Translations under genes and position numbers: made by a program | Source: Leidyana gryllorum EB-2025a | Lineage: Eukaryota; Protista; Apicomplexa | Reading direction: 5' to 3' | DNA length: 64,000 bases | Assembly: GCA_048772705.1 (NCBI GenBank) | Contig: JBLWGC010000204.1 | Location: 1-64,000, forward strand | Notes under the pieces: generated by a model | The model's database searches: none | Seen by the model: only the letters and a program-made list of their open reading frames with translations | What the model was told of the DNA's origin: nothing | Shown here: positions 1-62,510 of the stretch, piece by piece | How the letters are laid out: each line of letters opens with the position of its first letter | How positions within the stretch are numbered: the stretch's first letter is position 1

Positions 1-1256
1 CTGAGTGTATTCACTTCATTCACTGCCTGCGGTTGCGCTGAATTGGTGAGACGCAAAGGAATGCTGTTGGAACCGAAGTTCTCTGTGCAGAGAGATCGGG
101 GGACGGAGTCACTTCTGACTCTGATCTGGCGATCTAAAGGGCACCAACGTCTGTTTGGCTACGATCACTGGAAGATGCGGTACCAAAGATTGATTGGAGT
201 GTATTGAGGGGTAATGGAGAGAGTGTTTGAAGTTTCTCTGCGGCACATTCTCGAGCACAGATAGCTTTAGCATGAATGTGTACCATCCCATCTCGTCTTT
301 GAATCAAACGATCAATAGCCGAGTGCATAAACTCCCGAGTTCCGTCAGAATATGGGCAATGTGTTGTGCCGACCTTATGGTCTGGATGACCCACACGAGG
401 TGATGCAGAGCCCCAACAGCCCGAGTGCCTCGGTAAGCAGCCTTTGATGTTATCGTTGCCGGTCGGCACAGAGCGTACAGAACTCATAAGAGTACGCCTT
501 CCCTACTTGGGGCTGCTAAATGAGCCTGAATCTCCATTATACTGAGGACAGAAGAGTCTTGGGTTCCCCAATGGCGGGCACTGTTTGATATCACCAGCCC
601 AGTTGCCGCAGACTTCCACTCAGCGTAGTGTAGCGTTGCGGAGGCGTGACTTCAGGTGGTACCACATTACACAAGGGGCCGCACACTATTTGACCTTCTC
701 CACTGCTGCATATTTTGGAGTTATAAATGGCCGTGTAGAGAGAAACGTCAGCGGGAACGGTGTTTGGCGGCGAGCAGAGCGTGACTGGAAGGTACTGTTC
801 ATGAAGTTTGGACTGATGGGTCCCCGCTGGCGCGATGCATCTGGTGAAGAGAAACTCCGTGAGCTCCCTAGCCTCTGGTCAATACTGATGACCATCTTAT
901 GGGGTGTGCCTGGTGCTGGATGAGTCTGAATTTCGTCCCCTTAAAAGAGGTGAAACATATTTCCGCGCAGATCAGAGACCGTTGTTCATTGTTGGCCCCG
1001 TCAGAGCCGCGCTTCCCCTGCCATCGTTGCCAGCCCAGATTGATGACGTCCAACGGCAGCTACCTCCCCGGAGCAGCACGTCTGTCTTGTTGCGGGTGCC
1101 GGACACCCCAGTGCTCCCACAAAGCGATTCCTCTCATATCTACGTCGGACGACTGCAACGTAAAGGGAACGACCTGTCTGCGCGCATCACCCACACCTTC
1201 ATACAGCTCGCACACGAGTGTGTGCAGATCACGTCTCCACTCTGCAGTGATCCGGA

Positions 1257-3227
1257 ATGCCAAGCGACCACATTTGGACCCAAATTCTGTCTTTCCTACC
1301 GCTGTGGGAGCTGACAAGAGTGGCAGGAGTGTCTAAACAGGTCCACAATATTCTTCACTCGGAGAGCTCCTTATTAGTATCACAACGACTCAGCCTCTCT
1401 GCGCCACAGTGGGCCTGGGTGCAGCACGCCTCTTGGTTTGAAGCGTGGCTTCAGAGATCGTGTCCGCACCTGGAATCGCTGTACTGGGTTGTACATGAAC
1501 CTGAAGAACCCCTCGTCATTGATCTATTGCAGAAGATGTGCAACTGGGGTGTGCCGAGGCTGACGGAGGCAACCATAGACGGATACATGCAAACTGGTCG
1601 AAGTCATACTCTCAGTTTTCCCCATCTGAAGTATCTGGCGATACCTGCGACAATGATGAAGCACGAGTTGCATATTGATGCTCCGAAACTGGAATGTTTG
1701 GTTGTCAGAACTCACAAGCTGCATCTGATCCGCCACGATTTAGCTGCGGCTCTCCGCCGAGCTCTGGGTAACGGCTCCGAGGGTCTCATCATTTCGGTGA
1801 CGAAACCGCAATTCAACTTTTGGTTTTGTCGAGGTCGAGGCAATCCCCCTACTGTTGTTGACGGCGGGTGGAGGTCTTCTCGCTCTCTGGTGGAGTTTCT
1901 ACCCGCGGCCCGGCAGTGGACAAGCGGCCAAATGGCACTTCATAACCAGTTCGCATTCAGATGGCCGGATGGAGCCAGGTGAGGCCTTTTGATGACCTGC
2001 AGAGATACATAGCGCAGAGGGTCACAAAGTTTCTTGGAGTACCTCACAAGAGAGTGGACCGATCGGGAGTGTTATATGCACCCGATGTGTCGCAAATTTC
2101 TGCGTGGAACGCACTACAGTGAAGCGCTGGGTGCCCAACGGGTTGTCCGAGAGACGCAAGAAGATGGGAATGTGTTTCCACGAGTGTACTCAAACTCATC
2201 ATGGTTTCTATTGGCCCGGACTCAGGATTTGGAGACACATCCTCTCCCGTGGATGATCCTCCCCCTGATTGAGGCCCCTGCGGTATACCCTCCCACATAC
2301 TTTGGATTGGCGAATGATCAAACGGCTTATTTGAGTCCTACGGGCATCCGACACCAATTGGATTGGTCAGAGGTGACAAGAGTCCTCTATGTGAACGATG
2401 AATCCATACCGACTTTGACGAAGGGCACTATCGAATCTCTGCCCTTCGAGCAGCTGCAACGCATCGAGTTACCCCTGCAGGGATGGGCTCTCGTCGCAGC
2501 ACTTTCTGAAAGCGCACCCGCACACCGTTGGCCTCCCGATTGTGTCCGAGTGCTGTGCCTTCACGCTGATCGAAAAGACTCTCCAGTGACAATACGCCAT
2601 GTCATTGAGCGCTGTCAGATCCAATATGTCGCTGTCACCGACATCCCTCTGTGCGACGACTTGATAGCGTGGTTTATAGTGGGGCACTCCATTTGGCGAC
2701 GGAGAGGTGTACGAGTTCGATTCGGTCTCCAATGTGCTGCGCTTGCAGACTATCCGTGGCCTAAAGTCCAATTGGAAATGGTTTCGGGACGGTATACTGA
2801 AGCCACTCTCCGAGCTTTGCTGAAATACATTGGATGCCCAGCTGAACTGATGCCTAAGTATCTGACGGCCCAGTGTCCCAACTGCCCGGAGGAATGGGAA
2901 TGGCTGAAGTACCAAAGTATCTGGGTTGCTTTGAGTCACTCCTTCTACACTGACTGCAACAGTGTTCCGAGGATGTTTGTCAAGCAGTGGTACTCTAAGA
3001 TGTTGGAAGCGACATCACCTGAGGCTCAGACCTCTGTTGGAGGGATGTACCAAGGTGTTATACGGGTCTGTCCGAACGACGAGTGGTTCGCACGGATGCT
3101 GTTGGACCAACGGTTTAGCGAGTTGGAGCGTTTGAATTGTCCCGTGCTTCTGCCCGCTGTTTGTCCCCCGAGTATTCACGGAGAAGTGTTCCCCCAGGAC
3201 GCGAAGGAGGAGTCGGCCGATCCATGA
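1257..3227 (+). CDS. F-box/LRR-like protein, copy 1; exons 1257-1978 and 2018-3227 (643 aa)
   Basis: F-box-like N-terminus PSDHIWTQILSFLPLWELTRVAGVSKQVHNIL; LRR-like PHLESL, PHLKYLAI, IDAPKLECL. The two ORFs share a frame. ORF1's TGA lies in donor AG|GTGAG, and removing 1979-2017 (39 nt, ends CGCAG) removes the intervening stops. ORF2's listed start is TTG, not ATG. Confidence 0.8.
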
Positions 3228-3329
3228 CAAAGGTTTTAGCAAAGAAGAACACGTGGCCTCTTTGTCATCAGTGTGATGTGGACCATTTTTTGGGTGCTGT
3301 TCTTGAAAATGGGTCAGGTCATCGAGGGG

Positions 3330-3950
3330 TGATAAACGTCGCTGTGTGACATCAACCCTAAGATCGATCTTACTTTGTTGCCAATACGTTTGCTTCAAAG
3401 GATTCACATTGATATGGGATTTATAGTTTATGGAAATGTTGGTGCCCGGATCTCACTCGTGGTGATGGGTGTTTGGATGTGCGTCTAATTGAACCGTTCC
3501 ACATCGAGTGAGCCCTCAACGAGAAGCAGCTGTATGCAGCAAGCGCGAAAGCCGCAGATTTGTGGCTAAATATTCGCACCTGCGTTCGAAGGGTGAGTTC
3601 GAGAGGTTTCTGATTGTTGGAAAGTCTCGTAGGGCACTCATATGGATGGCTTTCCTGATCCATCAATGCAGAGAGAACGGTTGCAGAGGAGGATGTGCGG
3701 CTGGATGTGGGATTGGAAAGCTTCCGTGGAAGAGGTGGTGGGATTAGGGGCAGACAGACTGAGCTCGATTCTCGACAAAGCACCCAATCCAGTCTCGAGG
3801 GAGAAGGTGGCGGGGAGGCAATGGTTCAAGGCCTTCTGGCCCAACCGTCCGGGATGAGGTCTCAATCTGTGGTGGTCACTGACCCTTCACCTGCCCTTTG
3901 GGATTGCGGTGACATTGTAACGGGATGTGCGGTGGTGCATGGACAGGTTG
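3330..3950 (+). pseudogene. Decayed paralog of the F-box family C-terminal region (repeated in each unit)
   Basis: Fragments in shifting frames follow the family order (best-preserved copy quoted): LPIRLLQRI~LPFEQLQRI; LPWKRWWNRLRCKQTELDSRAL~YPWPKVQLEMVSGRYTEATLRAL; RQWFKAF~KQWYSKM; RNVQW~PNDEW. Confidence 0.5.
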
Positions 3951-5381
3951 GCGGAAAGGAGTCCGGAAGCGCCGGGAGGTAACAATGGGGCGACGGCCGT
4001 CAAGAATGGGACGAATAACCAAAGGTCGGCGACGGGCCAGAGGCAGAGCCAAGCGATGACTGCAGCAACTGACGGTGGTCCACTATGGTGACGCTGAGCA
4101 GCACTGAGTGTATTCACTTCATTCACTGCCTGCGGTTGCGCTGAATTGGTGAGACGCAAAGGAATGCTGTTGGAACCGAAGTTCTCTGTGGAGAGAGATC
4201 GGGGGACGGAGTCACTTCTGATTCTGATCTGGCGATCTAAAGGGCACCAACATCTGTTTGACTACGATCACTGGAAGATGCGGTACCAAAGATTGATCGG
4301 AGTGTATTGAGGGGTAATAGAGAGAGTTATTGAAATTTTTCTGTGGCACGTTCACGAGCGCAGATAGCTTTAGTTTGAAAGAGTACCATCCCACCTCGTA
4401 TTTAAAGCAAACGATCAACAGTTCAGTGCATAAAGCTCCAAGTTCCGTCGCAATATGGGCTATGTGTTGTGCCGACCTTATGGTCTGGATGACCGACACG
4501 AGGTGATGAAGAGCCCCAACAGCCCGAGTGCCTCCCTAAGCAGCCTTTGATGTTATCGTTGCCGGTCGGCACAAAGCGTACAGAGTTCATAAGAGTACGC
4601 CTTCCCTACTTTGGGCTGCTGGAAGAGCCTGAATCTCCATTATACTGGGGACGGCAGTGTCTTGGGTCCCCCAATGCTGGGCACTGCTCGATATCACCAA
4701 CCCAGCTGCCGCAGACTTCCACTCAGCGTAGTGTAGCGTTGCGGAGGCGTGACTTCAGGTGGTACGACATTACACGAGGGGCCGCACACTATTTGACCTT
4801 CTCCACTGCTGCATATTTTGGAGTTATAAATGGCGGTTTTGAGAGTAATGTCAGCGGGAACGGTGTTTGGCGGCGAGCAGAGCGTGACTGGAAGGTACTG
4901 TTCATGAAGTTTGGACTGATGGGTCCCCGCTGGCGCGATGCATCTGGTGAAGAGAAACTCCGTGAGCTCCCTAGCCTCTGGTCAATACTGATGACCATCC
5001 TATGGGGTGTGCCTGGTGCTGGATGAGTCTGAAGTTCGTCCCCTTAAAAGAGGTGAAACATATTTCCGCGCAGATCAGAGACCGTTGTTCATTGTTGGCC
5101 CCGTCAGAGCCGCGCTTCCTCTGCCATCGTTACCAGCCCAGAATGATGACGTCCTACGGCAGCTACCTCCCCGGAGCAGAACGTCTGTCTTCTTGCGGGT
5201 GCCGGACACCCCATGGACACAAAGATGGGGAGACAGTGCTCCCGGAAAGCGATTCCTCTCATATCTACGTCGGACGACTGCAACGGGAAGGGAACGACCT
5301 GTCTGCGCGCATCACCCACACCTTCAAACAGCTCGCACACGAGTGTGTGCAGATCACGTCTCCACTCTGCGGTGATCCGGA

Positions 5382-7352
5382 ATGCCAAGCGACCACATTT
5401 GGACCCAAATCCTGTCTTTCCTACCGCTGTGGGAGCTGACAAGAGTGGCAGGAGTGTCTAAACAGGTCCACAATATTCTTCACTCGGAGAGCTCCTTATT
5501 AGTATCACAACGACTCAGCCTCTCTGCGCCACAGTGGGCCTGGGTGCAGCACGCCTCTTGGTTTGAAGCGTGGCTTCAGAGATCGTGTCCGCACCTGGAA
5601 TCGCTGTACTGGGTTGTACATGAACCTGAAGAACCCCTCGTCATTGATCTATTGCAGAAGATGTGCAACTGGGGTGTGCCGAGGCTGACGGAGGCAACCA
5701 TAGACGGATACATGCAAACTGGTCGAAGTCATACTCTCAGTTTTCCCCATCTGAAGTATCTGGCGATACCTGCGTCAATAATGAAGCACGAGTTGCATAT
5801 TGATGCTCCGAAGCTTGAATGTTTGGTTGTCAGAACTCACAAGCTGCATCTGATCCGCCACGATTTAGCTGCGGCTCTCCGCCGGGCTCTGGGTGACGGC
5901 TCCGAGGGCCTCATCATTTCGGTGACGAAACCGCAATTCAAGTTCTGGTTTTGTCGAGATCGAGGCAATCCCCCTACTGTTGTTGACGGCGGATGGAGGT
6001 CTTCTCGCTCTTTGGTGGAGTTACTACCCGCGGCCCGGCAGTGGACAAGCGGCCAAATGACAGTTGATAACCAGTTCACATTCAGATGGCCGGATGGAGC
6101 CAGGTGAGGACTTCTGATGACTTGCAGAGATACATAGCGCAGAGGGTCACAAAGTGTCTTGGAGTACCTCACAAGAGAGTGGACCGATCGGGAGTGTTAT
6201 ATGCACCCGATGTGTCGCAAATTTCTGCGCGGAACGCACTACAGGGTACCGCTGGGTGCCCAACGGGTTGTCCGAGAGACGCAAGAAGATGGGAATGTGT
6301 TTCCACGAGTGTACTCAAACTCATCATGGTTTCGATTGGCCCGAACTCAGGATTTGGAGACACATCCTCTCCCGTGGATGGTCCTCCCCCTGATTGAGGC
6401 CCCTGCGGTATACCCTCCCACATACTTTGGATTGGCGAATGATCAAACGGCTTATTTGAGTCCTACGGGCATTCGACACCAAGTGAATTGGTCAGAGGTG
6501 ACAAGAGTCCTCTATGTGAACGATAAATCCATACCGACTTTGACGAAGGGCACTATCGAATCTCTGCCCTTCGAGCGGCTGCAACGCATCGAGTTACCCC
6601 TGCAGGGATGGGCCCTCGTCGCAGCACTCTTTAAAAGCGCACCCGCACACCGTTGGCCTCCCGATTGTGTCCGAGTGCTGTGCCTTCACGCTGATCGAGA
6701 AGAGTCTCCGGGGACAATACGCCATGTCATTGAGCGCCGTCAGATCCAATATGTCGCTGTCACCGGAATTCCTGGGTGCACTGAATTGACAGCGTGGTAT
6801 ATAGTGGGGCACTCCATCTGGCGACGGAGAGGTGTACGAGTTCGCTTCGGTCTCCAATGTGCTGCGCTTGCAGACTATCCGTGGCCTAAAGTCCAATTGG
6901 AAATGGTTTCGGGACGTTATACTGAAGCCACTCTCCGAGCTTTGCTGAAATACATTGGATGCCCAGCTGAAGTGATGCCTAAGTATCTGACGGCCCAGTG
7001 CCCCAAGTGCCCACAGGAATGGGAATGGCTGGGGTGGCTAAGCATCTGGGCTGATGTGAGTCGCTCCTTCTACACTGACTGCGACAGTGTTCCGAGGATC
7101 TTTGTCAAGCAGTGGTACTCTAAGATGTTGGAAGCGACATCACCTGAGGCTCAGACCTCTGTTGGAGGGATGTACAGAGGTATTATGCGGGTCTGTCCGA
7201 ACGACGAGTGGTTCGCTCGGATGCTGTTGAACCAACAGTTTAGCGAGTTGGACCGTTTGAACTGTCCCGTGCTTCTGCCCGCTGTTTGTCCCCCGAGTAT
7301 TCACGGAGAAGTGTTCCCCCAGAACGCGAAGGAGGAGTCGGCCGATCCATGA
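5382..7352 (+). CDS. F-box/LRR-like protein, copy 2; intron 6104-6142
   Basis: Same structure and length as copy 1; splice sites conserved. Confidence 0.8.
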
Positions 7353-9502
7353 CAGTGGTTTTAACAAAGAAGCACACGTGGCCTCTTCACCATCATTGTG
7401 ATGTGGGCGATTTTTGGGTGCTGTTCTTGAAACTGGGTCAGGTCATCGAGGGGTGATAAACGTCGCTGTGTGACATCAACCCTAAGATCGATCTTACTTT
7501 TTGCCAATATCTTTGCCTCAAAGGTTTCACATTGATATGGGATTTATAGTTTATGGAAATGTTGGTGCTCGGATCTCACTCGTGGTGATGGGTGTTTGCA
7601 TGTGCGTCTAATTGAACCGTTCCACATCGAGTGATCCCTCAACGAGAAGCAGCTGTATGCAGCAAGAGTGGAAAGCCGCAGATTTGTGGCTAAATCTTCG
7701 CACCTGCGTTCGAAGGGTGAGTTCGAGAGGTTTCTGATTGTTGGAAAGTCTCGTAGGGCACTCGTATGGATGGCTTTCCTGATCCATCAATGCAGAGAGA
7801 ACGGTTGCAGAGGAGGATGTGCGGCTGGATGTGGGAGTGGAAGGCTTCCGTGGAAGAGGTGGTGGAATAGATTGAGGTGCAAACAGACTGAGCTCGATTC
7901 TCGAGCTTTGGATACCCAAAGCACCCATTTCAGTCTCGAGGGAGAAGGTGGCGGGGAGGCAATGGTTCAAGGCCTTTTGACCCAACCGTCCGGGACGAGG
8001 TCTCAATCTGTGGTGGTCACTGACCCTTCAACTGCCCTTTGGGATCAGGTGACATTGCAACGGAATGTGCAGTGGTGCATGGACAGGTTGGGGGAAATAA
8101 GAGCTGAGAAGGCCCGCAACAGAGGGACGAATGACCAAAGGCATACGGCAGCGCCGGGAGGTGACAATGGGGCGACGGCCGTCAAGAATGGGACGAATAA
8201 CCAAAGGTAGGCGACGGGCCAGAGGCAGAGCCAAGCGATGACTGCAGCAACTGACGGAGGTCCACTATGGTGACGCTGAGGAGGACTGAGTGTATTCACT
8301 TCATTCACTGGCTGCGATTGGGCTGAATCGGTGAGACGCAAAAGAATGCTGGTGGAACCGAAGTTCTCTGTGGAGAGAGATCGGGGGACGGAGTCACTTC
8401 TGATTCTAATCTGGCAGTCTGGAGGGCCACAACATCTGTTTGACTACGATAACTGGAAGATGCGGTACCAAGATTGATTGGAGTGTATGGAGGGGTAATG
8501 GAGAGAGTTATTGAAATTTCTCTGTGGCACAGATAGCTTTAGCATGAATGTGTACCATCCCACCTCGTATTTAAAGCAAACGATCAATAGCTGAGTGCAT
8601 AAAGTCCCGAGTTCCGTCAGAATATGGGCGATGTGTTTGGCGACCTTATGGTCTGGATGACCGACACGAGGTGACGAAGAGCCCCAACAGCCCGAGTGGC
8701 TCGGTAAGCAGCCTTTGATGTTATCGTTGCCGGTCGGCACAGAGCGTACAGAGTTCATAAGAGTACGCCTTCCCTACTTTGGGCTGCTGGACGAGCCTGA
8801 ATCTCCATTATACTGAGGACGGAAGAGTCTTGGGTTCCCCGATGGCGGGCACTGTTTGATATCGCCAGCCCAGTTGCCGCAGACTTCCACTCAGCGTAGT
8901 GTACCTTTGCGGATGCGTGACTCCAGGTGGTACGACATTACACGAGGGGCCGCACACTATTTGACCTTCTCCACTGCTGCATATTTTGGAGTTGTGAATG
9001 GCCGTGTAGAGAGAAACGTCAGCGGGAACGGTGTTTGGCGGCGAGCAGAGCGTGACTGGAAGGTACTGTTCATGAAGTTTGGACTGATGGGTCCCCGCTG
9101 GCGCGATGCATCTGGTGAAGAGAAACTCCGTGAGCTCCCTCTGTGGGGTGTGCCTGGTGCCCCCTTGAGAGAGGTGAAACATATTTCCGCGCAGATCAGA
9201 GACCGTTGTTCATTGCCGGCCCCGTCAGAGCCGCGCTTCCTCTGCCATCGTTGCCAGCCCAGAATGATGACGTCCAACGGCAGCTACCTCCCCGGAGCAG
9301 AACGTCTGTCTTCTTGCGGGTGCCGGACACCCCATGGACACAAAGATGGGGAGACAGTGCTCCCGGAAAGCGATTCCTCTCATATCTACGTCGGACGACT
9401 GCAACGGAAAGGGAACGACCTGTCTGCGCGCATCACCCACACCTTCAAACAGCTCGCACACGAGTGTGTGCAGATCACGTCTCCACTCTGCGGTGATCCG
9501 GA

Positions 9503-11473
9503 ATGCCAAGCGACCACATTTGGACCCAAATCCTGTCTTTCCTACCGGTGTGGGAGCTGACAAGAGTGGCAGGAGTGTCTAAACAGGTCCACAATATTCT
9601 TCACTCGGAGAGCTCCTTATTAGTATCACAACGACTCACCCTCTCCGCGGCACAGTGGGCCTGGGTGCAGCACGCCTCTTGGTTTGAAGCGTGGCTTCAG
9701 AGATCGTGTCCGCACATGGAATCGCTGTACTGGGTTGTACATGAAGGTGGAGAACCCCTCGTCATTGATCTATTGCAGAAGATGTGCAACTGGGGTGTGC
9801 CGAGGCTGACGGAGGCAACCATAGACGGATACATGCAAACTGGTCGAAGTCATACTCTCAGTTTTCCCCATCTGAAGTATCTGGCGATAACTGCGACAAT
9901 GATGGAGCACGAGTTGCATATTGATGCTCCAAAGCTGGAATGTTTGGTTGTCGGAACTTACATGTTGCATCTGATCCGCCACGATCTAGCTGCGGCTCTC
10001 CGCCGAGCTCTGGGTGACGGCTCCAAGGGTCTCGTCACATCGGTGACGAAACCGCAATTCAACTTCTGGTTTTGTCGAGATCGAGGCAATCCCCCTACTG
10101 TTGTTGACGCCGGATGGAGGTCTTCTCGCTCTCTGCTGGAGTTTCTACCCGCGGCCCGGCAGTGGACAAGCGGCCAAATGGCACTTCATAACCAGTTCAC
10201 ATACAGATGGCCGGATGGAGCCAGGTGAGGACTTCTGATGACTTGCAGAGATACATAGCGCAGAGGGTCACAAAGTGTCTTGGAGTACCTCACAAGAGAG
10301 TGGACCGATCGGGAGGGCTATATGCACCCGATGTGTCGCAAATTTCTGCGTGGAACGCACTACAGTGAAGCGCTGGGTGCCCAACGGGTTGTCCGAGAGA
10401 CGCAAGAAGATGGGAATGTGTTTCCACGAGTGTACTCAAACTCATCATGGTTTCGATTGGCCCGAACTCAGGATTTGGAGACACATCCTCTCCCGTGGAT
10501 GGTCCTCCCCCTGATTGAGGCCCCTGCGGTATACCCTCCCACATACTTTGGATTGGCGAATGATCAAACGGCTTATTTGAGTCCTACGGGCATCCGACAC
10601 CAAGTGAATTGGTCAGAGGTGACACGAGTCCTCTATGTGAACGATAAATCCATACCGACTTTGACGAAGGGCACTATCGAATCTCTGCCCTTCGAGCAGC
10701 TGCAACGCATCGAGTTACCCCTGCAGGGATGGGCCCTCGTCGCAGCACTTTCCGAAAGCGCACCCGCACACCGTTGGCCTCCCGATTGTGTCCGAGTGCT
10801 GTGCCTTCACGCTGATCGAAAAGACTCTCCAGTGACAATACGCCATGTCATTGAGCGCTGTCAGATCCAATATGTCGCTGTCACCGACATCCCTCTGTGC
10901 GACGACTTGATAGCGTGGTTTATAGTGGGGCACTCCATTTGGCGACGGAGAGGTGTACGAGTTCGATTCGGTCTCCAATGTGCTGCGCTTGCAGACTATC
11001 CGTGGCCTAAAGTCCAATTGGAAATGGTTTCGGGACGGTATACTGAGGCCACTCTCCACGCTGTGCTGAAATACATTGGATGCCCAGCTGAACTGATGCC
11101 TAAGTATCTGACGGCCCAGTGTCCCAACTGCCCGGAGGAATGGGGATGGCTGAAGTACCAAAGCATCTGGGTTGCTTTGAGTCACTCCTTCTACACTGAC
11201 TGCAACAGTGTTCCGAGGATCTTTGTCAAGCAGTGGTACTCTAAGATGTTGGAAGCGACATCACCTGAGGCTCAGACCTCTGTTGGCGGGATGTATCAAG
11301 GTGTTATACGGGTCTGTCCGAACGACGAGTGGTTCGCTCGGATGCTGTTGAACCAACAGTTTAGCGAGTTGGACCGTTTGAATTGTCCCGTGCTTCTGCC
11401 CGCTGGTTGTCCCCCGAGTATTCACGGAGAAGTGTTCCCCCAGGACGCGAAGGAGGAGTCGGCCGATCCATGA
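9503..11473 (+). CDS. F-box/LRR-like protein, copy 3; intron 10225-10263
   Basis: Same structure and length as copy 1; splice sites conserved. Confidence 0.8.
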
Positions 11474-13599
11474 CAAAGGTTTTAGCAAAGAAGAACACGT
11501 GGCCTCTTCGTCATCAGTGTGATGGAGACCATTTGTTTGGTGCTGTTCTTGAAAATGGGTCAGGTCATCGAGGGGTGATAAACGTCGCTGTGTGACATCA
11601 ACCCTAAGATCGATCTTACTTTGTTGCCAATACGTTTGCCTCAAAGGTTTCACATTGATATGGGATTCATACTGTATGGAAATGTTGTTGCTTGGATCTT
11701 ACTCGTGGTGATGGGTTTTTGCATGTGGGGCTATTTGAGCGGTTCCACATCGAGTGATCCCTCAACGAGAAGCAGCTGTATGCAGCAAGAGTGGAAGGCG
11801 CAGATTTGTGGCTAAATCTTCGCACCTGCGTTCGAAGGGTGAGTTCGAGAGGTTTCTGATTGTTGGAAAGTCTCGTAGGGCACTCGTATGGATGGCTTTC
11901 CTGATCCATCAATGCAGAGAGAACGGTTGCAGAGGAGGATGTGCGGCTGGATGTGGGAGTGGAAGGCTTCCGTGGAAGAGGTGGTGGAATAGATTGAGGT
12001 GCAAACAGACTGAGCTCGATTCTCGAGCTGTGGATACCCAAAGCACCCAATTCAGTCTCGAGGGAGAAGGTGGCGGGGAGGCAATGGTTCAAAGCCTTCT
12101 GGCCCAACCGTCCGGGATGAGGTCTCAATCTGTGGTGGACACTGACCCTTCAACTGCCCCTTGGGATCAGGTGACATTGCAACGGAATGTGGAGTGGTGC
12201 ATGATGCAGCTGGGAGGGGGTCCGGAAGCGCTGGGAGGTGACAATGGGACGAATGACCAAAGGTAGGCGACGGGCCAGAGGCAGAGCCAAGCGATGGCTG
12301 CAGCAACTGACGGAGGTCCACTATGGTGACGCTGAGCAGCACTGAGTGTATTCACTTCATTTACTGCCTGCGGTTGCGCTGAATTGGTGAGACGCAAAGG
12401 AATGCTGTTGGAACCGAAGTTCTCTGTGGAGAGAGATCGGGGGACGGAGTCACTTCTGATTCTGATCTGGCGATCTAAAGGGCACCAACATCTGTTTGAC
12501 TACGATCACTGGAAGATGCGGTACCAAAGATTGATCGGAGTGTATTGAGGGGTAATAGAGAGAGTTATTGAAATTTCTCTGTGGCACGTTCTCGAGCACA
12601 GATAGCTTTAGCATGAATGTGTACCATCCCACCTCGTATTTAGAGCAAACGATCAATAGCCGAGTGCATAAAGTCCCGAGTTCCGTCAGAATATGGGCGA
12701 TGTGTTGTGCCTACCGTATGGTCTGGATGACCCACACGAGGTGATGCAGAGCCCCAACAGCCCGAGTGCCTCGGTAAGCAGCCTTTGATGTTATCGTTGC
12801 CGGTCGGCACAAAGCGTACAGAGTTCATAAGAGTACGCCTTCCCTACTTTGGGCTGCTGGAAGAGCCTGAATCTCCATTATACTGGGGACGGCAGTGTCT
12901 TGGGTCCCCCAATGCTAGACACTGCTCGATATCACCAACCCAGCTGCCGCAGACTTCCACTCAGCGTAGTGTATCTTTGCGGATGCGTGACTTCAGAAGG
13001 TGGTACGACATTACACGAGGGGCCGCACACTATTTGACCTTCTCCACTGCTGCATATTTTGGAGTTGTAAATGGCGGTTTTGAGAGTGATGTCAGCGGGA
13101 ACGGTGTTTGGCGGCGAGCAGAGCGTGACTGGAAGGTACTGTTCATGAAGTCTGGACTGATGGATCCCCGCTGGCGCGATGCATCTCGTGAACAAGAACT
13201 CCGTGGGCTCCCTAGCCTCTGATCAATACTGATGACCATCCTATGGGGTGTGCCTGGTGCTGGATGAGTCTGAACTTCGCCCCCTTAAGAGAGGTGAAAC
13301 ATATTTCCGCGCAGATCAGAGACCGTTGTCCATTGCCGACCCCGTCAGAGCCGCGCTTCCTCTGCCATCGTTGCCAGCCCAGTAAGATGTCGTCCAACGG
13401 CAGCTACCTCCCCGGAGCAGAACGTCTGTCTTCTTGCGGGTGCCGGACACCCCGTGCTCCCGCAAAGCGATTCCTCTCATATCTATGTCGGACGACTGCA
13501 ACGGAAAGGGAACGACCTGTCTGCGCGCATCACCCACACCTTCATACAGCTCGCACACGAGTGTGTGCAGATCACGTCTCCACTCTGCGGTGATCCGGA

Positions 13600-13761
13600 A
13601 TGCCAAGCGACCATATTTGGACCCAAATTCTGCTTTCCTACCGCTGTGGGAGCTGACAAGAGTGGCAGGAGTGTCTAAACAGGTCCACAATATTCTTCAC
13701 TCGGAGAGCTCCTTGTTAGTATCACAACGACTCATCCTCTCCGCGGCACAGTGGGCCTGGG
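13600..13761 (+). pseudogene. Truncated, frameshifted fourth copy of the F-box gene
   Basis: ATG at 13600; 1-nt deletion (CTGCTTTCC vs CTGTCTTTCC) at ~13633; sequence breaks off at ~13761. Confidence 0.85.
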
Positions 13762-15289
13762 CGCGCTGCAGGCTAGTCGGTTTGATGGTCCTCGCTCTTA
13801 TGTTCCACCCCTCGTGGGACAGGGAGCACTGCAGGATGGTGATTGATGTTAACCTTTATGTCTTCAGTCGGTGCGTTCTTTTTTGTGTTCAGTACCATCA
13901 GAGCTCGGTCGCGGAATGACCCTGGACAGTACGTATTCCCTTTCTGGCGGGCAGCGGCTCAGACGCAATGTTGGACGGCTGGAACGGGCCCACCAAGTGG
14001 CTGTGTGTCGCATCCGGCCGAGACACGTCGAACACCTATTGTAGGCGCACCGGCATGAGGTGCTTCTGGGACAACGGATCTCGGACAGAAGTGCGAGCGG
14101 AGGCTCCGAGAGCTTGTAGGCAGAACGGGTTTGCGTGCACTCAGCACATCCTGTCAGAAGAAAGCGCTTAAGCGTTGTAGTTAGGCCACGTTACGCCAGA
14201 TATTCTTCCCAAACTTGTTTGGAGCCACGAGTAGGACTTGAGCTGGTGAGAGTGAAGCAGGCAAACATTACAAACGGATGGCGGTGGTGAGTCGGAGGTC
14301 ACAAAGCTCAAGTAACTCACGACAAGTGTCGCACGAGTAGCTCTCGGCTCAGCCACTTCGAGTAGAAGGTGACATCAGGCATTGGGGTCTTCATCGGCTC
14401 CGCAAATGTATTTCCCATCCTGAGGAACCCCATCCGGCCAACTGGTTGCACCGCATATGCGAGGGACAGGCACAAGGTCTGTTGACGCAGCCGCTCTTTC
14501 AACCAGTGAACGATAGAGGGAGCTGATCGTATTACAAGTTGTGCTCTCAGAGAGTTCGGGTGAAGACACAGTAATGGGTTCGGAGTGTGGTGTAAAGATG
14601 GTGGTGTCAATCGTTTATCACACGCATGGAGGGGAGGTTTCCGGTTGATACCAACTGCAGTCCGGGCGAAACTACACTCTTGCACAATTAGAGCGGGACT
14701 AATTGCTTCCCACAGACTGCGAGCCACAGGGAGCAGCCGCGCAGAAACCTCAAATAACGGGAGGAATAAGTGTGGCGGGTGACAGAGTGGTTGGATAGAG
14801 CGGAGACAGAGCTCCCAGCCCTTACGCTTAATTTCTGCGCAGTGAGTTTTGATCTCGTCAGTCCCTGACCAGCAGGTTGGAGCTTGTGATGCATCATCGT
14901 GTAGGTGCTAGACGAAGTGCACGCATGTGGCATTCACGAGAATCCCATTTGGTCAAGCAACACAAATATGAGTGACAAAGTTGTTGAATATCTCAACAAT
15001 TCTCTATGTCACTAGAGAAAGAACTTTTTCATTTTACAACTGATCTGAGCTGTGAGGCTCGAGGAGTGATTATTTCAGATCGGACTCTGACCAATGTACC
15101 TCGTGTGCGACACACACACGCTGTTGTCCCAACTGCATTTGTGGGGTGAAGGATGTGTGTCACCTCACGTAATCTGAGGTCACCGGATTCTCGCTCGCCA
15201 CCGTAGACTGTGGTGCGATTGGAATGATCTAACGAGACCATCAACCCAGAGCCTCCCGATAGGCTGTGAGTTGGCATTCTGGATGGATG

Positions 15290-15738: not shown

Positions 15739-17151
15739 CTAAACGTTTATTGTGGTGAGATCTTCGAGAAGACGGCTTGCCGTTTTTGTACGATTGGATT
15801 CAATGTGAGATTGATGTTCCTGATAGAATGTTCGGGCATTCTTGAGGATATCGGGGTCGTTCATGCACCGTGAAAGTCGCTCGATTAACGTTTCACGATG
15901 CAACTCATTGGGTCCGTCGTCTTTGTGGGTCCAAAGATTGATGCCCACCTTCCACACCTTCTCTGCCAATTCGGCGTTCATGTGTTGGTCCGCGGCGACT
16001 GGGAGGAAGGCCAACGGGGCGGGGGTCAAAGACATTCCCTCGGACATACTGTTCCATCCACAGTGGGTGACGAACAATCGGATGGCGTGATGGGAGAGCA
16101 CAGCTCTCTGGTTGACCCACGGAGCTATACAGCATCGGTGTCCGAGTCGCTCCCTGAAACCAACCGGAAGGCCGTGAGCATCGGTTTCGCAGGGCGGTGG
16201 GCGTAGTGTCTCTGTGTGTTCCGCCTCCCTTTTCTCCTGATCGTTCCGATTCCTAAAGTAGAAGCCTCGTTCGCGGCAGGCCCACAGGAACGGCTGGCCA
16301 GTGGCTTCCAGTGCTTCAGCCAACTGCACATTGTCACACAGACTCAGATCCGCCCACGAGCCCAGAGCGATATAAATGACGCTGTTGGGCTGTTGCTGAT
16401 CCAGCCACGACAAGACTGGATCATTGGCATGCGAGGCTGAGTCCGGCGGCGGCGTTTCGAGATAGTCGTTGAGATAGCCCAATGCGTGTATGCCGCCTTT
16501 GGGCTGCAACGCCGTCGAGGTCAGTATATCGGTTTCGACGGTGTTTTTCAGCTCGAGGAACCCAGGCTCGCATGGGCTCTCATTGACGATGAGACTGCAA
16601 GTACTCGAGATTAGCTGACGTGCATGCTGGAAGAAACCCATCAACACGGGATCGTCTGGGAGGTCCGGAACGTTGACCGTCCCGAGCTTGCCGATGCCCG
16701 GGACGTGCAACTCCTCTCTCTTTCCGAATCCTTGCCACATCAGGTAGAAGCAGTACAGCGGGGAAGGGAAGAAGCAATAGTGTTTCACATTCAGTGTCTC
16801 CGCCACTCCTCGGGCCCATGTCGCGAAGGGGTCGTGGATGATAGCCCGCAAATCGAGCTTAGCGGCCTGCACTAACCCACAGTCGACCAGTGCCACACGA
16901 TTTTCGTGCAGCCATTCGAATTGTTTGTGATTCTGACGCCCCGCCATCACCTCCTTGGGTAAATCGACGGGCAAAATCTTAACGTGGGGGAACTCGTCCG
17001 TAGGAAGAACATTCCCGGGCGCCAACGATACCATCAGATGCGGTCGCAGAAGCCCATTACTGTAGCGGTGCAGAATTTCTCCAATTGCCATCATAGGACG
17101 GAAGTGGCCGTGGCCGTCAATGGTACACAAAAGAACATCAACTCCAGACAT
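15739..17151 (-). CDS. Family-1 UDP-glycosyltransferase, plant-type PSPG box, intronless
   Basis: GHGHFRP catalytic His region; WLDQQQPNSVIYIALGS; PSPG box WVNQRAVLSHHAIRLFVTHCGWNSMSEG...PVAADQ; 470 aa. Confidence 0.93.
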   Translation of the reverse strand: MSGVDVLLCTIDGHGHFRPMMAIGEILHRYSNGLLRPHLMVSLAPGNVLPTDEFPHVKILPVDLPKEVMAGRQNHKQFEWLHENRVALVDCGLVQAAKLDLRAIIHDPFATWARGVAETLNVKHYCFFPSPLYCFYLMWQGFGKREELHVPGIGKLGTVNVPDLPDDPVLMGFFQHARQLISSTCSLIVNESPCEPGFLELKNTVETDILTSTALQPKGGIHALGYLNDYLETPPPDSASHANDPVLSWLDQQQPNSVIYIALGSWADLSLCDNVQLAEALEATGQPFLWACRERGFYFRNRNDQEKREAEHTETLRPPPCETDAHGLPVGFRERLGHRCCIAPWVNQRAVLSHHAIRLFVTHCGWNSMSEGMSLTPAPLAFLPVAADQHMNAELAEKVWKVGINLWTHKDDGPNELHRETLIERLSRCMNDPDILKNARTFYQEHQSHIESNRTKTASRLLEDLTTINV

Positions 17152-17689: not shown

Positions 17690-18589
17690 TTACTCTTCGT
17701 CAACAATGACGCGGAGGTTCTTGGGCATCTGATCAATGTGGATGAGAACGGCATCAGCTTCAGCATCGCAGTGCTCGCCGTTGCAGCAGTTCTCGCCAAC
17801 GCATCCACCGTCACAACGCTCGCCGTCGCAGTCGTTGTTAAGCACAGCTGAGATGGCAGAGGTCAGGGCGTTGCGCACGTTGCGGCTGTCCTCCTCGATC
17901 TTCCAGACAACACCGTTGTTGCCGAGGTCGCGGACGAGACGGCGGTAGATGGGAGCCACGTCCGCGGTCACCAGGAACACCGGGGTGATCTTGCGGGCAT
18001 CGAGCGCCTCCTTGACTTGTTCAACGCTGGGATAGTCTTCGCCCAAACAGTCAGCAACACCGTCACCGTTGTTCGCCGTCAGCTCAGAGTCTCCGGCTTG
18101 GTGGAACCCGGCGTCAGTAACGACCACCATGAGACGGTGGATCAGGTATCCGTTCGGGGTCTCGTCGGTTTCGCTCCAGTTGGTGTCGTTCGAGCGAGCG
18201 GCAGAGAGCATCGCTTGGAGCTGAGACTCGGGCCAGTCGCCACCGGAGTGGATCTTGGCGGCGTTGAAGGACTCGCGCAGACGAGAGGTGTAGCGAGTGA
18301 GTTTGTACCTGAGCTGATAGCAGTAGTCTTTGGACACCTCGTATCCGAATTTGTCAAGCGGCTTGTCAGTGAAACCAGCGAGCCCGAAACGAGAATGCGG
18401 GAACGTCCATTTGAGCTCTTCGATGGCATCCGGAAACTGTTGACGCAGAGAGGGCAGGTCATTCTCGAAGGAGAGCGAAAAATCTTGAAGCCAAAGGAGA
18501 TCAAGGGTGTGGTAGTAAGGGGCCAGCCCGAATGGGTGAGCGTCAATGAGGCCAGCGGCGAGGAAAACGGCGCAAAGTGACTTGAACAT
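17690..18589 (-). CDS. Secreted integrin-beta I-like (vWA) domain protein
   Basis: Signal-like MFKSLCAVFLAAGLIDA from ATG 18589; MIDAS DFSLS; FTDKP, GGDWPES, VVTDAGFHQAGD, DYPSV; Cys-rich tail; no TM segment. Confidence 0.88.
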   Translation of the reverse strand: MFKSLCAVFLAAGLIDAHPFGLAPYYHTLDLLWLQDFSLSFENDLPSLRQQFPDAIEELKWTFPHSRFGLAGFTDKPLDKFGYEVSKDYCYQLRYKLTRYTSRLRESFNAAKIHSGGDWPESQLQAMLSAARSNDTNWSETDETPNGYLIHRLMVVVTDAGFHQAGDSELTANNGDGVADCLGEDYPSVEQVKEALDARKITPVFLVTADVAPIYRRLVRDLGNNGVVWKIEEDSRNVRNALTSAISAVLNNDCDGERCDGGCVGENCCNGEHCDAEADAVLIHIDQMPKNLRVIVDEE

Positions 18590-19254
18590 TTCCAACAAGA
18601 ACGAATAAAAGTGTTGGTGAGAAAGAGAGGAGATGAGCTGTCTGATTTTGGTACCATTAGATTGGCGAGCATTACAAAGTCCCAACGCCCTGGGACAAGA
18701 TCTGTGTCACGGTGCATGTGTGTGTGAATTTGGGTTCCGCGATGGAAGGTGAGGAGAATACAGTCACGTGTTGTGAGAGCTTCAAAGCATCGGTGGTCGA
18801 CGGGTTATACACTTTGGCGCTGTTGCCGGTGACTTTACTGTTAGTTGTGGGACTGGGCGTTCAGATGGTGGGGTCGGCCGCACGAGATTGTGGGCAAGGA
18901 CTGAGGCGACGAGTGCGGTGGGGGTCGGTATCTTCCAAAAGTGACTGATGGCCAAGATATCTATCCTTCACCCTGGTTTCAATCCCAGAAGTGGAATCCC
19001 TACCTTCAACCCTCTACAGTTTATCTCTTCCGTTCTTGTTCGTTACTCCTGACTGACTGCACGCACGTATTCTAAAACTATCAGCCCGCGCGGGCGTGTC
19101 TCTGACCCACAAACTGACTCTCTGTCAACGCACAACTGTTGATCGATGTCAGATGCTTCGCTACTTAGGCTCTGATGGAAGCGAGAAATAGGACGCAGCG
19201 TCGACGGGAGGAGATTGGGGAGACTGGGAAGATTGCCAATTGGTTTTCTCTGTC

Positions 19255-24640: not shown

Positions 24641-25471
24641 CTAAACGCTCGGTGGGGGCCTGACCATGATCCAGAACACTAAGTCGGTGTCCGGAACTGC
24701 ATACTCGGCCACCAGTTCGAACCCAAACTTGCGATATATGGCCACGTTCTTCTCAAGTGAGGTGTGTAGGTGGACTGGCAACTTGCCTCCCCCGTGCTGC
24801 AACACAGTTAAGAAACACATCGCCGCCACGCCACAGTGAAGCACATTTTAGTGAAGCGTCGACCGCTAGTGCTCCGGCGGGCGCACTTGCTGTCCCTCAT
24901 CGACTTTCGACGAACACTCCCTCTCCAGTTCGGCGCACGGACAATGGACACAGCGACGAACACGTACCTCGTCGATGCGACGCAGAGCTTCCGCGAATAA
25001 GGCCTTCCCCAGGCCCTTGCCCTGGTGCTCAGGGTGCACAGCGAGGAACCCTAACCTAGCATATGGTCCCTCAATAGTCCAGATATTATGGAGATTCTTC
25101 TCGATCTCGAGGTAAGCGGGTCCATAAATTCCTTGGGCCCGCGCAAGTCCCTCCATATCCATTTGTGGTTCGTCGTACCACCAGAACGCTACACCCGAAC
25201 AGTCATCAGAGACAAGACTCTGTCCAGTGTTGATACCACCATGAGCAAAGATTCGACTCATCTCAGTATGAGCCCTCTTACGATCTGGGGGATCGAGGTT
25301 CTGCAGCGTATAGTTCTCATATGGATAGTCGTAGAACGCGCGATGCAAAGTTTCTGTCACAGCGGCCATGTCGTCTTGGGTGGCAGCGCGAAGAGAAACT
25401 CGGTTCTTCGGCTGCTGCCGCCCTATACCTATTGAATTGGCCTTGTTCACCTGCGCAGTATCTGTTATCAT
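24641..25471 (-). CDS. GNAT acetyltransferase 1 (intron 24967-24797)
   Basis: Motif A FLAVHPEHQGKGLGKAL; motif B LHTSLEKNVAIYRKFGF. Confidence 0.88.
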
Positions 25472-25637
25472 TGGTAAAAGACTAAATTTGCAAATTGCCC
25501 TTCTCGTTCTGCAGCGGCTATGCCAAGTGAGCTACTTGTCAGTCGTGTCTCCACGCAACGCAATCAGCACACACACGTCTCGCGTGCGACAATTGATAAC
25601 AAATCATGCTGTCAAGTGCAAAACCTTTATTAAGGGA

Positions 25638-26322
25638 CTACTCGGTGGTGGGTGGTCTCCTTATCATGATCCAGAAGTCCAGATCATCGCGATGTACTTC
25701 TGCTTCAATGTCAAAACCAAACTTCTTGTAGATTTGCACGTTCTTGGGCACCGATGTATGTAAGTGGATGGGTAGCTTGCCCTGTCCACGCTGCAGGGCA
25801 CTCATCCTCATTTGGTCCACTGGGCAGGCTTACCTCTTCGATTTGTCGAATGGCCTCGAGTAGCAAGGCTTTACCAAGGCCCTCCCCCTGATGCTGAGGG
25901 TGAACGGCAAGGAAGCCGATCATGGCAACCGGACCTTGAGGCTTCCATGCCTCATCGATGCTGTGTTCAATTTCCATAAATACTGTGAAAGCCTCGCCTT
26001 TGACTTCGCGCACGGTGTCTAGATCCGACTCAATCTTGTCGTACCACCACAGAATGACCCCTGCTCCCTCGTTGGCGATAGCAGTGTGACCAGTCTTGAT
26101 GGCATTGGCACAGATCGATTGTGCGAGCTTTTTCTGCGCTTCTTGGCGCCTTTCGGGGTCGAAAGCACCCATCACATAACGTTGGTAAGGGTAGTCTTGG
26201 AACGCCAACTGTACTGTTTCCGACATAGCCGGGATGTCGTCAGGCGTTGCGTCACGAACATTGATAACGGGGCGAGTGATAGGAGTGGACACGTCCGCTC
26301 GTACTGCCGGGGCCAACAACAT
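25638..26322 (-). CDS. GNAT acetyltransferase 2 (intron 25833-25791)
   Basis: FLAVHPQHQGEGLGKAL; LHTSVPKNVQIYKKFGF; first ATG 26322. Confidence 0.88.
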
Positions 26323-26619
26323 TGCCACTCCGTCGAAATAATTTCTGTTGGGCGACAAGGGTTGTATGCGGGCGCCACGCTTCCCAAAGTGTCCAAGTCT
26401 GTCATTACTGGTGGCGTGGCTTTCTATATCTGAATGATCTATCGGTTGGATGATTGAGGGCCAATGGAAGGTTCACCATTACTCGTGAAAAAAAGTGGAG
26501 TACGGGAGATGGGTCGGAGAGTTCGGAAGTCCGATTATTAGCAGCCCTTCAATGTCTCCCCCATGGGGACAGCGAAACCAAAAATCGTCACACCGCTTGT
26601 CTCCATTGGTCGGCCGACA

Positions 26620-28585
26620 TCACTGAAGAGAGGGACAGATGGGGACAGGTAGCCATTGGGTCAATCCGGAATTGTCGGTGGACTTCGGGGTGGGGCCCTT
26701 CAGACCACAGCCGTCGACCCATTTCTCAGGAACCACAGACGGCACCACCATGGGCACACCCCAGTCTCTTAGGTCTTTGTACTTGCGGGTCACTACTCGT
26801 TCGAGGAAGCATGGCGATTGGAGATCCAGCCAGCCGAGAGTACATGAGGAGAAGTTCTCGTTGGGAACCGCTATCAATGGGGTGGCGGCGAGAATCTGTG
26901 CGTACCATTCTCGAAACTCTTTCCTTTTATGGGGAGGGATACGTCCGACATCCAATACCGGAGTGTTGGATGCGAATAACCAATTCGGCAAATAGTTTCC
27001 CCATAGATGGAACTGATCCGGATCTCCCTCAGTCGTCAAACGGTGTATCTCCTCTGCACTCCCCTCCTCTTCGTCCCAGCCGAACTCCTCCAAAAGCAAT
27101 CTCAGAGTGGACTCCGTGTATTCCCCACGAACGAGCTCCAGCAGTACCACCGACCACGGGTGGAGGTGATATCCTACACACGGAAGACAAATTCGAACCC
27201 GTCTGTTGCGTGCGTGCTGTACCACGTAAGCTGTCAAATACAGCCACAACAGATGAGCCGTTGAGCTGATTGCATCGTCCAATGTAACATAAGTGACTTT
27301 AGTCATCAAAAGGAGCGACAACCAATGGCCGGCGTTCTCCATTGTTTCGGGAAGGTCGTGGTATTCGGGCACCATCAAGATGGCTGTGTCGTCGGGTCTG
27401 AGAACGTCAGTATCCAACTCAAACTTCGGGACCTCCACCGACGATATCTCAACACGACGTCCATCGGGTGTCTCATAAGCGCGGATGGCTGGGCCGCCGT
27501 AAACATCACCCCAATACCGATCGATCACTGAGTTTGGGAAGGTCACCTCGTTGTCAGAGAAAGTCGCGCTTTGCCCCCTTCGCCAGGCAACGGGAACAAA
27601 TGAGACCCACTCTGGGACGTTTGCGATGTCGAGTGTCACACAGAGAGAGAGTCCCAAAGGATACTGCAGCATTCTTGATACGCAGACAAACGACGTAAGG
27701 AATATGAATCACAGATCATCCGTCGAAGTGGGGACGATAGGGTCGACACAGATCTCATCCACTGCTCCTGAATCGAGTCAGCGACATCATCTGCGTCTTC
27801 GCTTCAGTGGAATATTATCAGCCCTCAGTCGTGATGAAGTCTCACCTGTCCTCTGTGGGCCACGTCTCATAGAGATCCCAACCGATGGGCGTGGCCGATA
27901 TCACTCTGTCTTCTCCGACTATTTCGCGGAGGAGACGGAGTTCCCAATCTCCTGGGCACGGGGCTTCAGAGATCACTAAGATCCATTCTGTACCATTGAT
28001 CAGAAGAATGGCCAATATATCATCATCAGCTTTGGCAGCCTCGTTTGCTTCGCTTAATTGTTCTCCCAGCGACCGAATCAACGGACTGTCGAATATGTCC
28101 AGATCCGACAGGCGAATGGCCAGCTGCTTCAAAACCGGAGTAGAGAAGCGCTTCATTGGGTGGAGACTGAATGCGGCACAGTTCAGATACTCCAGGTGAG
28201 GGGCGACGACGCTGGTGGCCACTAAAGAATAGTACGGAAATGGCTCCTCCATCTGGACAATGAATTGTTTGGCCGATTGGAGCCAGCGGAGCCAAATGTC
28301 ATCCAACGTGTGAGCTAAAGTCCGCGCAGTGCTCCGAGAGGTCGCAGTGATTCTCACCGTATCCACTCTTTCACGGAAGCACCACTCCAGCGACGTCCGA
28401 CCCCACTCCCACTCGTCACTGAAGCAATCAGACCCGTGAATATGAAGGGATGGGGCGGGCGCATATTCACTGTAGAGTACACTGTCAGGTTTGTCGAGGG
28501 CGTTCAGCACCGTGAGAGCTTCAATGAATCGTAGAAACCGACAGATCTGTGCTATGCAAATTGAGGGGAGTGGTGATTGTGTCAT
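26620..28585 (-). pseudogene. Divergent member of the F-box/LRR-like family; intron 27845-27802; frameshift near (CT)n at ~27642-27651
   Basis: LPSICIAQICRFLRFIEAL, VLYSE, APHLEYL match exon 1. Exon ends WPTEDR at AG|GTGAG as in the array copies (WPDGAR). LELVRGEYTESTLRLLL, REWYAQILAATP and VPMVVPSVVP match exon 2. Confidence 0.72.
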
Positions 28586-28813: not shown

Positions 28814-29512
28814 TTACACAACTTGAGATTTCGCAGTGGGACTGCGAATCATTACCCAGAAGACGAGATCGTCACGTTTGTACTCGCCTTTGACCTCAAA
28901 ACCGAACTTTTTGTAGATTTGGACATTCTTCGGCAATGAGGTGTGCAGGTGGACAGGCAATTGGCCCTTTCCGTGCTGAGGGTGGGTGGGTGGATGGGGG
29001 TTAGGTGGGCCGTTGCTCACCTCCTCGATTTGACGAAGGGCTTCTGTGAGAAGAGCTTTGCCAATGCCCTTATTTTGATGGTCGGGATGGACACCTAAAT
29101 AATGAATCATTGCTATGGGTCCCTCAACGGGCCAGAGAGCCTCCACTCCCTCTTCAATTTCCAGGAATTCGGGATAGGTGATGCCTTTGACAGCCTTGGT
29201 GGCTTCAGGATCGATATCGATCTTGTTGTACCACCACAAAATAGCTCCGGCGCCGTCGTTGGCCACGGCTGTGTGACCGGTTTTCAAAGCGCTGATGCAT
29301 ACATTGCGACAGACGTGCTTATTAAAGGCAGTCGCAGTTGTGGCGTCCAAGCTACGAAATAGATATCTTTTGTAGGGATAGTCTTTGAATGCCGCATGGA
29401 CTGTATGAGCCAAAATGTCAATGTCGCCATCAGTTGCGGGACGTATGTTTATCTTTTGCTTTGACGAGTCATTGGGCAGGACACCCGTGGTTACATTAGC
29501 CTCTGAAACCAT
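28814..29512 (-). CDS. GNAT acetyltransferase 3 (in-frame 45-nt intron 29020-28976)
   Basis: YLGVHPDHQNKGIGKAL; LHTSLPKNVQIYKKFGF; GTGAGC..CTCAG intron at the same site as in GNAT 1 and 2. Confidence 0.88.
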   Translation of the reverse strand: MVSEANVTTGVLPNDSSKQKINIRPATDGDIDILAHTVHAAFKDYPYKRYLFRSLDATTATAFNKHVCRNVCISALKTGHTAVANDGAGAILWWYNKIDIDPEATKAVKGITYPEFLEIEEGVEALWPVEGPIAMIHYLGVHPDHQNKGIGKALLTEALRQIEEVSNGPPNPHPPTHPQHGKGQLPVHLHTSLPKNVQIYKKFGFEVKGEYKRDDLVFWVMIRSPTAKSQVV

Positions 29513-59015: not shown

Positions 59016-59455
59016 CGCTCGCAAGATTTTTAGTTCTAATGTTATGATTCAATGGCTGGTTTGCCAGAAACAGACTTTCGTCAGCCTCAAGCCGCTGATG
59101 CCAAGAAATACAAGTTTGAATAGAGTAGAAATCCCCCTTTATTCACTATCACTCATCCCAAACACCGAACACTGATGAACAAACTCTGCCGACAAGTGAG
59201 TGAACAGAGAAAATCCCAAAATGGTGGCAGACATCAGTGCGCGACAAACAGATGCCTCTCACACGAGATCTCGGCCAAGATAACGTAAGGCTCGCCCCAA
59301 CAACTCTCGTAGTGTCGACACCCAGAGAGACGCTTTATTACTTTGTTCGCCGGGAGTGTTCTCAAAAGGATGATTAGTGAGTGAGTGTTCTGGGGGGTGT
59401 TGAATAAATTTGTTATAAAACACTATAAGGGCTGTGGTTTGAGGGAGTTATAGAG

Positions 59456-62326: not shown

Positions 62327-62510
62327 TCTCGGGGTTCAAATCAAACAACGGGATCGTCAACCACCCAAAAACTGTAATAAACACGAGCCGAACCGTACAT
62401 AAAATAGCAATCATGTGAACTCAACTTATCGCTCAGATCGTTTATGAGATCGCAATCAGCCATAACGGCTTTGGAATCTCTCGCTGACCACATACTTTCA
62501 ACCTTCGCTA

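Follow-up and report, generated by a model that had tools for sequence, protein, structure and literature searches.

A tandemly amplified F-box/leucine-rich-repeat gene family in Leidyana gryllorum, a putative lineage-specific set of SCF substrate receptors

The first 64,000 nucleotides of contig JBLWGC010000204.1 from Leidyana gryllorum EB-2025a (assembly GCA_048772705.1, forward strand; hereafter the window) open with a tandem array of ≈4.12-kb units that fills the first 13.8 kb and comprises three intact copies and a truncated fourth (Table 1). The units are ≈93% identical across their whole length. Each very likely holds, judging by comparison with related sequences, one two-exon gene encoding 643 amino acids, with an F-box and leucine-rich repeats (LRRs) at the N-terminus. 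We consider it probable that these genes belong to a lineage-specific expansion of substrate receptors for the SCF (Skp1–Cullin–Rbx1) ubiquitin ligase. The array begins at the contig edge and may extend further upstream. No telomeric repeats were present at the seven array-bearing contig ends looked at, and the arrays at contig ends therefore look like assembly breaks rather than subtelomeres.

Copy 1 contains open reading frames (ORFs) at 1257–1982 (241 amino acids) and 2034–3227 (397 amino acids, counted from a TTG) in a common frame, and the corresponding pairs in copies 2 and 3 (5382–6107/6159–7352 and 9503–10228/10280–11473) are likewise in frame. An earlier note on this DNA had proposed that a 39-nt GT..AG segment removes the stops between the two ORFs in all three copies. 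When this was recomputed, the segments contained both in-frame stops, and their removal left 643 codons and one terminal stop each time. That the two ORFs form one spliced gene, as the note had also claimed, is borne out by the paralogues: the form AG/GTGAG...CAG is kept at the same codon, in phase 2, in 24/24 distinct close paralogues from the window and eight other contigs. Among these, the intron is 39 nt long in 10 and 38 nt in 14, its inner sequence varies between arrays, and protein identity between arrays is 52–59%. Most of the distant paralogues (≈20–30% identity) have GT(A/G)AG candidates of 37–62 nt near the equivalent position, as do contigs of related species, one of them with 38 nt and the same form. 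The Skp1 gene of this genome has introns of 39 and 55 nt, and the modal intron length in Gregarina niphandrodes is 37 nt (PMC9250747). Natural single-ORF members with both halves were found on contigs C35 (658–665 amino acids) and C33 (a 684-amino-acid frame) and in other samples (P0012, P0015, P0017 and P0019).

The units might instead hold two neighbouring genes, an F-box/LRR stub and an orphan, or a gene translated by stop-codon read-through; many chance GT..AG pairs restore the frame, and our gene model rests on comparison. We rejected both as exceedingly improbable: donor and acceptor are fixed at one codon while intron sequence and length vary, the second ORF lacks a conserved ATG, and single-ORF homologues occur naturally. 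Read-through is excluded because the 38-nt introns shift the frame.

Homology searches, alignments, fold predictions and selection tests were run exon by exon. In the protein scan, the window protein matched the F-box family PF00646 with an E-value of 5e-4 and 20.2 bits, just under the cut-off of 20.5; in the genome scan, the window copies scored 23.2–23.6 bits, above the cut-off, as did ≈45 other loci. Across the family, 38 of 44 members matched, with paralogues reaching 30.7 bits. At the sequence level, the F-box assignment thus appears borderline for the window copies alone and clear for the family. The predicted model of exon 1 has a three-helix F-box fold (helices 4–11, 16–25 and 27–34; model confidence, pLDDT, 80–91) directly followed by an LRR solenoid, and it aligned from residue 1 with FBXL3/5/17/2. 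The LxxLxL pattern is conserved at residues 72, 102, 124 and 145, and the model has parallel strands. There are only about five LRR strands; LRR proteins dominate the match lists of exon 1 by both profile and structure, and 13 of the 44 members weakly matched the plant FBD-associated LRR family PF24758. Family-wide PF00646 matches, the PDB profile and the predicted fold therefore agree on the F-box plus LRR layout that had been suggested.

Exon 2 encodes a family-specific region of ≈400 residues, alpha/beta plus helical. A word-based homologue search found nothing, and there was no significant match in Pfam, NCBIfam, PDB sequence, Foldseek PDB, Foldseek viral, VIA wide or ESM Atlas shape and feature searches. 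FBD, FBA and FTH were not matched in Pfam by any of 47 exon-2 members (E ≤ 0.5). The region has six strands spaced 19–31 residues apart, with one clear LxxLxL (residue 146), and its last 150 residues are helical. The beta-alpha repeat in the middle of the model may represent degenerate LRRs; LRR folds scored no better than TIM barrels against the model, and an internal-repeat test, in which the exon 1 LRR and exon 2 profiles were compared, gave a match probability of 0.5%, which is not significant. The conserved positions are mostly Trp, Pro, Gly, Tyr and Leu. The earlier note had called this region a novel substrate-binding domain outside any known family. The lack of a known family stands after these searches, and a binding role is suggested by the positively selected patches described below, but a new fold is not established, as its middle part may be made of degenerate LRRs.

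The family is far larger than the three copies from which an expanding, lineage-specific family had been proposed. In the 15.5-Mb genome (237 contigs), the exon 1 and exon 2 profiles gave 115 and 114 matches, respectively, and after allowing for fragments we estimate roughly 90–100 loci, about half of which were read in sequence. They lie on >25 contigs, mostly in tandem arrays with a unit length of about 2.2–4.1 kb, and several are frameshifted or contain stops; about 35 belong to the close clade that includes the window copies. Some of these contigs may belong to a single array or represent haplotype duplicates. When the exon-2 profile was run against 1.84 billion representative proteins, 14 proteins matched, and the eight that were traced all came from three sequencing samples; in one of these samples there is an array that is syntenic with contig C177 (L036 vs L029; 32–42% identity). 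The same profile retrieved nothing named from Toxoplasma, Plasmodium or reference gregarine sets. So far, the family appears from these searches to be restricted to one eugregarine lineage.

Some members carry long N-terminal extensions before the F-box (L040 1628–4261, 877 amino acids; L041 70–4440, 1456 amino acids; and a 1372-amino-acid frame at G000:C177:71032). On contig C35 (L013 4514–6054, minus strand), two unrelated ORFs of 304 and 209 amino acids lie between intronless family copies. The contigs of ERR10900103/ERR10900105 (L035–L037, L040 and L042) appear to come from single-cell DNA that was amplified or from mixed libraries, because they have SMART-type adapter ends together with unspliced multi-gene stretches.

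A palindrome of the type GCACAC-N4-GTGTGC is found about 47–32 nt before the ATG of every close-clade gene examined. It has five matches in the window, compared to 0.38 expected, and four of these precede the four copies. The spacers between arrays are otherwise unrelated, making the palindrome a candidate for a shared promoter or 5' untranslated regulatory element. The 2.15-kb spacer of the window unit shows 5.5–6% divergence and many indels, similar to the synonymous divergence (dS, 0.04–0.07), and thus seems to evolve like neutral DNA; it had no detectable conserved ORF, no homologue and, the palindrome excepted, no likeness to the spacers of other arrays. No Rfam match or short tandem repeat was found in the array.

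In both exon trees, the copies group by array, and the branching order inside an array is not the same for the two exons, a pattern that local duplication and conversion are expected to produce. Array-specific clades, truncated copies and frameshifted copies are signs of birth-and-death evolution. Codon models were fitted with our own implementation, whose M0 likelihoods equal those of IQ-TREE. The overall ω was 0.40 and 0.48 for the two exons, and models with positive selection were favored in likelihood ratio tests (58 and 92 for M2a over M1a; 59 and 84 for M8 over M8a). With one gene per array, the tests were still significant, at 12.7 (p 4e-4) and 21.0 (p 5e-6). Mean ω was 0.25 in the F-box, 0.69 in the LRRs, 0.32 in the helical core of exon 2 and 0.86 in its C-terminal part; by this measure, the F-box is under purifying selection. 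The selected sites in exon 1 lie at or just after the LRR strands (46–50, 78–82 and 130–132) and at 193–194, and those in exon 2, numbered from position 2019, at 31–36, 310–314 and 346–352. The family thus combines a large, clustered gene set with a constrained F-box and positive selection outside it, the pattern of tandem F-box expansions.

In light of these results, we propose that the proteins are intracellular and that the N-terminal F-box would dock on Skp1 of the SCF ligase, as suggested by homology and purifying selection. In the genome we detected one Skp1, along with at least two cullin loci; the Skp1 (C230 ≈901,300–901,900) keeps a C-terminal NDFSP-type proline, the site of hydroxylation/glycosylation in Toxoplasma and Dictyostelium. 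The LRR arc and the C-terminal region would jointly form a variable target-binding surface, as indicated by where selection acts, and the bound target would be ubiquitinated and then degraded, which is established for the F-box class and proposed here. The family grows by tandem duplication, with copies homogenized within arrays and some dying. Two things weigh against this reading: taken alone, the restored frame is ambiguous, as 71–84 GT/GC..AG pairs near each junction also restore it, and the selection results are subject to gene conversion, an indel near 130–132 and the empirical-Bayes nature of the site calls.

The diversifying surface points to changing targets. If the proteins are SCF adaptors, our preferred guess, held with somewhat less than even confidence, is that they act within the parasite cell on proteins that are foreign or selfish. 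The role against viruses or selfish elements that the earlier note had suggested is speculative. The fuller picture of a cell-autonomous immune repertoire, in which ≈100 SCF adaptors with an undescribed C-terminal fold, co-regulated via the palindrome, target viral, hyperparasite or selfish-element proteins for degradation, is more speculative and doubtful as a whole. No virus, selfish element or linked toxin was found with the family.

A possible, if less likely, variant differs in the targets, the adaptors acting on the parasite's own proteins, in stage-specific turnover, in partner or self/nonself recognition and incompatibility when cells pair and gametes form, or as toxin antidotes. That the close clade shares a 5' motif suggests that its genes are co-regulated and possibly expressed at particular stages. 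In nematodes, divergent F-box/solenoid proteins serve as antidotes or underlie hybrid incompatibility, and in plants they are the detoxifiers of self-incompatibility (PMC12680543). However, ≈100 diverging copies exceed what housekeeping turnover takes in Toxoplasma, with its 18 F-box proteins (PMC6685633), and the window unit has no linked partner gene, its spacer being neutral-like and free of conserved ORFs. A toxin gene tightly linked to the F-box gene was not found in the window unit, the other arrays being covered non-exhaustively, and a toxin–antidote pair was rejected on the same properties of the spacer and its lack of homologues.

It is unlikely that the N-terminal bundle resembles an F-box but has ceased to bind Skp1, the proteins being LRR scaffolds or decoys, or that a cryptic enzyme makes up the C-terminal region. 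Within exon 1, no part is more constrained than the F-box. Among the conserved positions of exon 2, no catalytic constellation was seen, and two homologues have Gln or Ser in place of E253; structural matches with TM-scores of at most 0.37 and root-mean-square deviations of 5–7 Å are background. Slightly less likely still are effectors exported to hijack the SCF of the arthropod host, as in some intracellular bacteria and viruses. This would fit a parasite genome with a large, variable family under positive selection, and we count on the same side the ubiquitination-related expansions described in Chlamydiae (PMC4209131). Export is nevertheless improbable because the F-box, as read from the sequence, begins at residue ≈2 and leaves no space for a signal peptide; the models have no transmembrane stretch, and the parasite encodes its own Skp1 and cullins. 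Finally, the many dispersed arrays and the duplication of the entire unit might suggest that the gene is cargo of a mobile element or of an endogenous virus. This was rejected as highly improbable: there are no inverted repeats ≥60 nt, no second conserved ORF and no viral fold match, unit length varies and spacers are unrelated between arrays, and in another species an orthologous array occupies a syntenic position.

Table 1. Positions of the family members in the window.
Feature	Position	Strand	Remarks
Tandem array	1..13764	+	Three complete genes and truncated fourth
Copy 1 5' palindromic motif	1210..1225	+	
Copy 1 exon 1	1257..1978	+	F-box residues ≈2–40 (1257–1376), about five LRR strands ≈41–192, low-confidence linker
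Copy 1 intron (39 nt)	1979..2017	+	Phase 2, GTGAG...CAG; inferred by comparison
Copy 1 exon 2	2018..3227	+	C-terminal family-specific region; beta-alpha repeats ≈2304–2753, then helical part with conserved ELxxGxY(T) motif
Copy 2 5' motif	5335..5350	+	
Copy 2 exon 1	5382..6103	+	
Copy 2 intron (39 nt)	6104..6142	+	
Copy 2 exon 2	6143..7352	+	
Copy 3 5' motif	9456..9471	+	
Copy 3 exon 1	9503..10224	+	
Copy 3 intron (39 nt)	10225..10263	+	
Copy 3 exon 2	10264..11473	+	
Truncated fourth copy	13600..13764	+	ATG at 13600 and 5' motif 13553–13568 both kept
Distant solitary paralogue	26620..28585	-	F-box/LRR exon from 28585, donor 27845, C-terminal region to 26620

In the fourth copy, one nucleotide is deleted after about codon 11, and similarity is lost near codon 56. 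In the distant paralogue, the frame appears to shift at a run of CT near 27650, which would reflect either a pseudogene or an assembly error. Around it lie three paralogous GNAT acetyltransferase genes (24866–26358 and 28814–29512, minus strand), with PF13508 confirmed for one. Adjoining the array is a single-ORF, 470-residue UDP-glycosyltransferase (15739–17151, minus strand; PF00201, E 4e-13). Such enzymes are unusual in apicomplexans, and this one is possibly a detoxification gene or a lateral transfer. An integrin-beta von Willebrand factor A (VWA) protein (17690–18685, minus strand; PF00362) has a signal-peptide-like start. Its identity is 55–57% with the proteins of Protomagalhaensia, Blabericola and Gregarina and 92% with that of one sequencing sample, with homologues solely in gregarines at E ≤ 1e-20; by its sequence, the organism, a gut parasite, is a eugregarine apicomplexan. 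About three tandem superfamily-1 helicase genes (56580–63977, minus strand; AAA_11/AAA_12, Upf1/IGHMBP2-like) form another local expansion, conceivably related to RNA surveillance. A 799-residue protein (33929–36328, plus strand), which starts with a zinc finger pattern resembling LYAR and continues in Ser-rich acidic/basic blocks similar to Nopp140, looks ordinary.

Assuming 6,000–7,000 genes, as in Gregarina niphandrodes, the family would take up about 1–1.5% of the genes. It points to an unrecognized genetic conflict in gregarines, with a hyperparasite, a selfish element or mating incompatibility. Gregarines are difficult to culture and manipulate. Our literature search found no report of an F-box expansion in gregarines. 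The earlier note had seen here a candidate for an undescribed kind of system, and this did not hold up, as nematodes and plants are well known to have fast-evolving F-box families that expand in tandem and carry C-terminal domains specific to each family. The novelty lies in the apicomplexan setting and in a C-terminal region without family assignment.

Like the FBXL receptors (FBXL3, FBXL5, FBXL2, FBXL17, SKP2, TIR1/COI1), which exon 1 matched best both by profile and by structure, the proteins have an N-terminal F-box followed by LRR strands. The Toxoplasma and Plasmodium F-box proteins (TgFBXO1; Plasmodium FBXO1) belong to the same phylum and share the SCF core, and apicomplexan F-box proteins often have C-terminal regions unrelated to those outside the protists (PMC6685633). 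However, Toxoplasma has 18 putative F-box proteins in all, TgFBXO1 and 17 others (PMC6685633), mostly single-copy, whereas ≈90–100 loci of one family are present here. In its workings the family resembles, without belonging to them, the expansions in Caenorhabditis (FBA/FTH, KSS/KSL) and plants (F-box/LRR/FBD), which are also tandem, evolve by birth and death, and combine a constrained F-box with a positively selected substrate-binding region (PMC8120010, PMC12680543); in C. elegans, this pattern has been interpreted as adaptive change in how substrates are recognized, possibly in immunity (PMC8120010). The family differs from these in its unrelated C-terminal region, with no FBA, FTH or FBD match, in having one detected Skp1 where nematodes expanded Skp1 too, and in being hosted by a unicellular parasite with a 15.5-Mb genome. 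If our interpretation is correct, it would be an independent case of the nematode and plant pattern in a single-celled parasite, from a phylum whose F-box repertoires were thought to be small.
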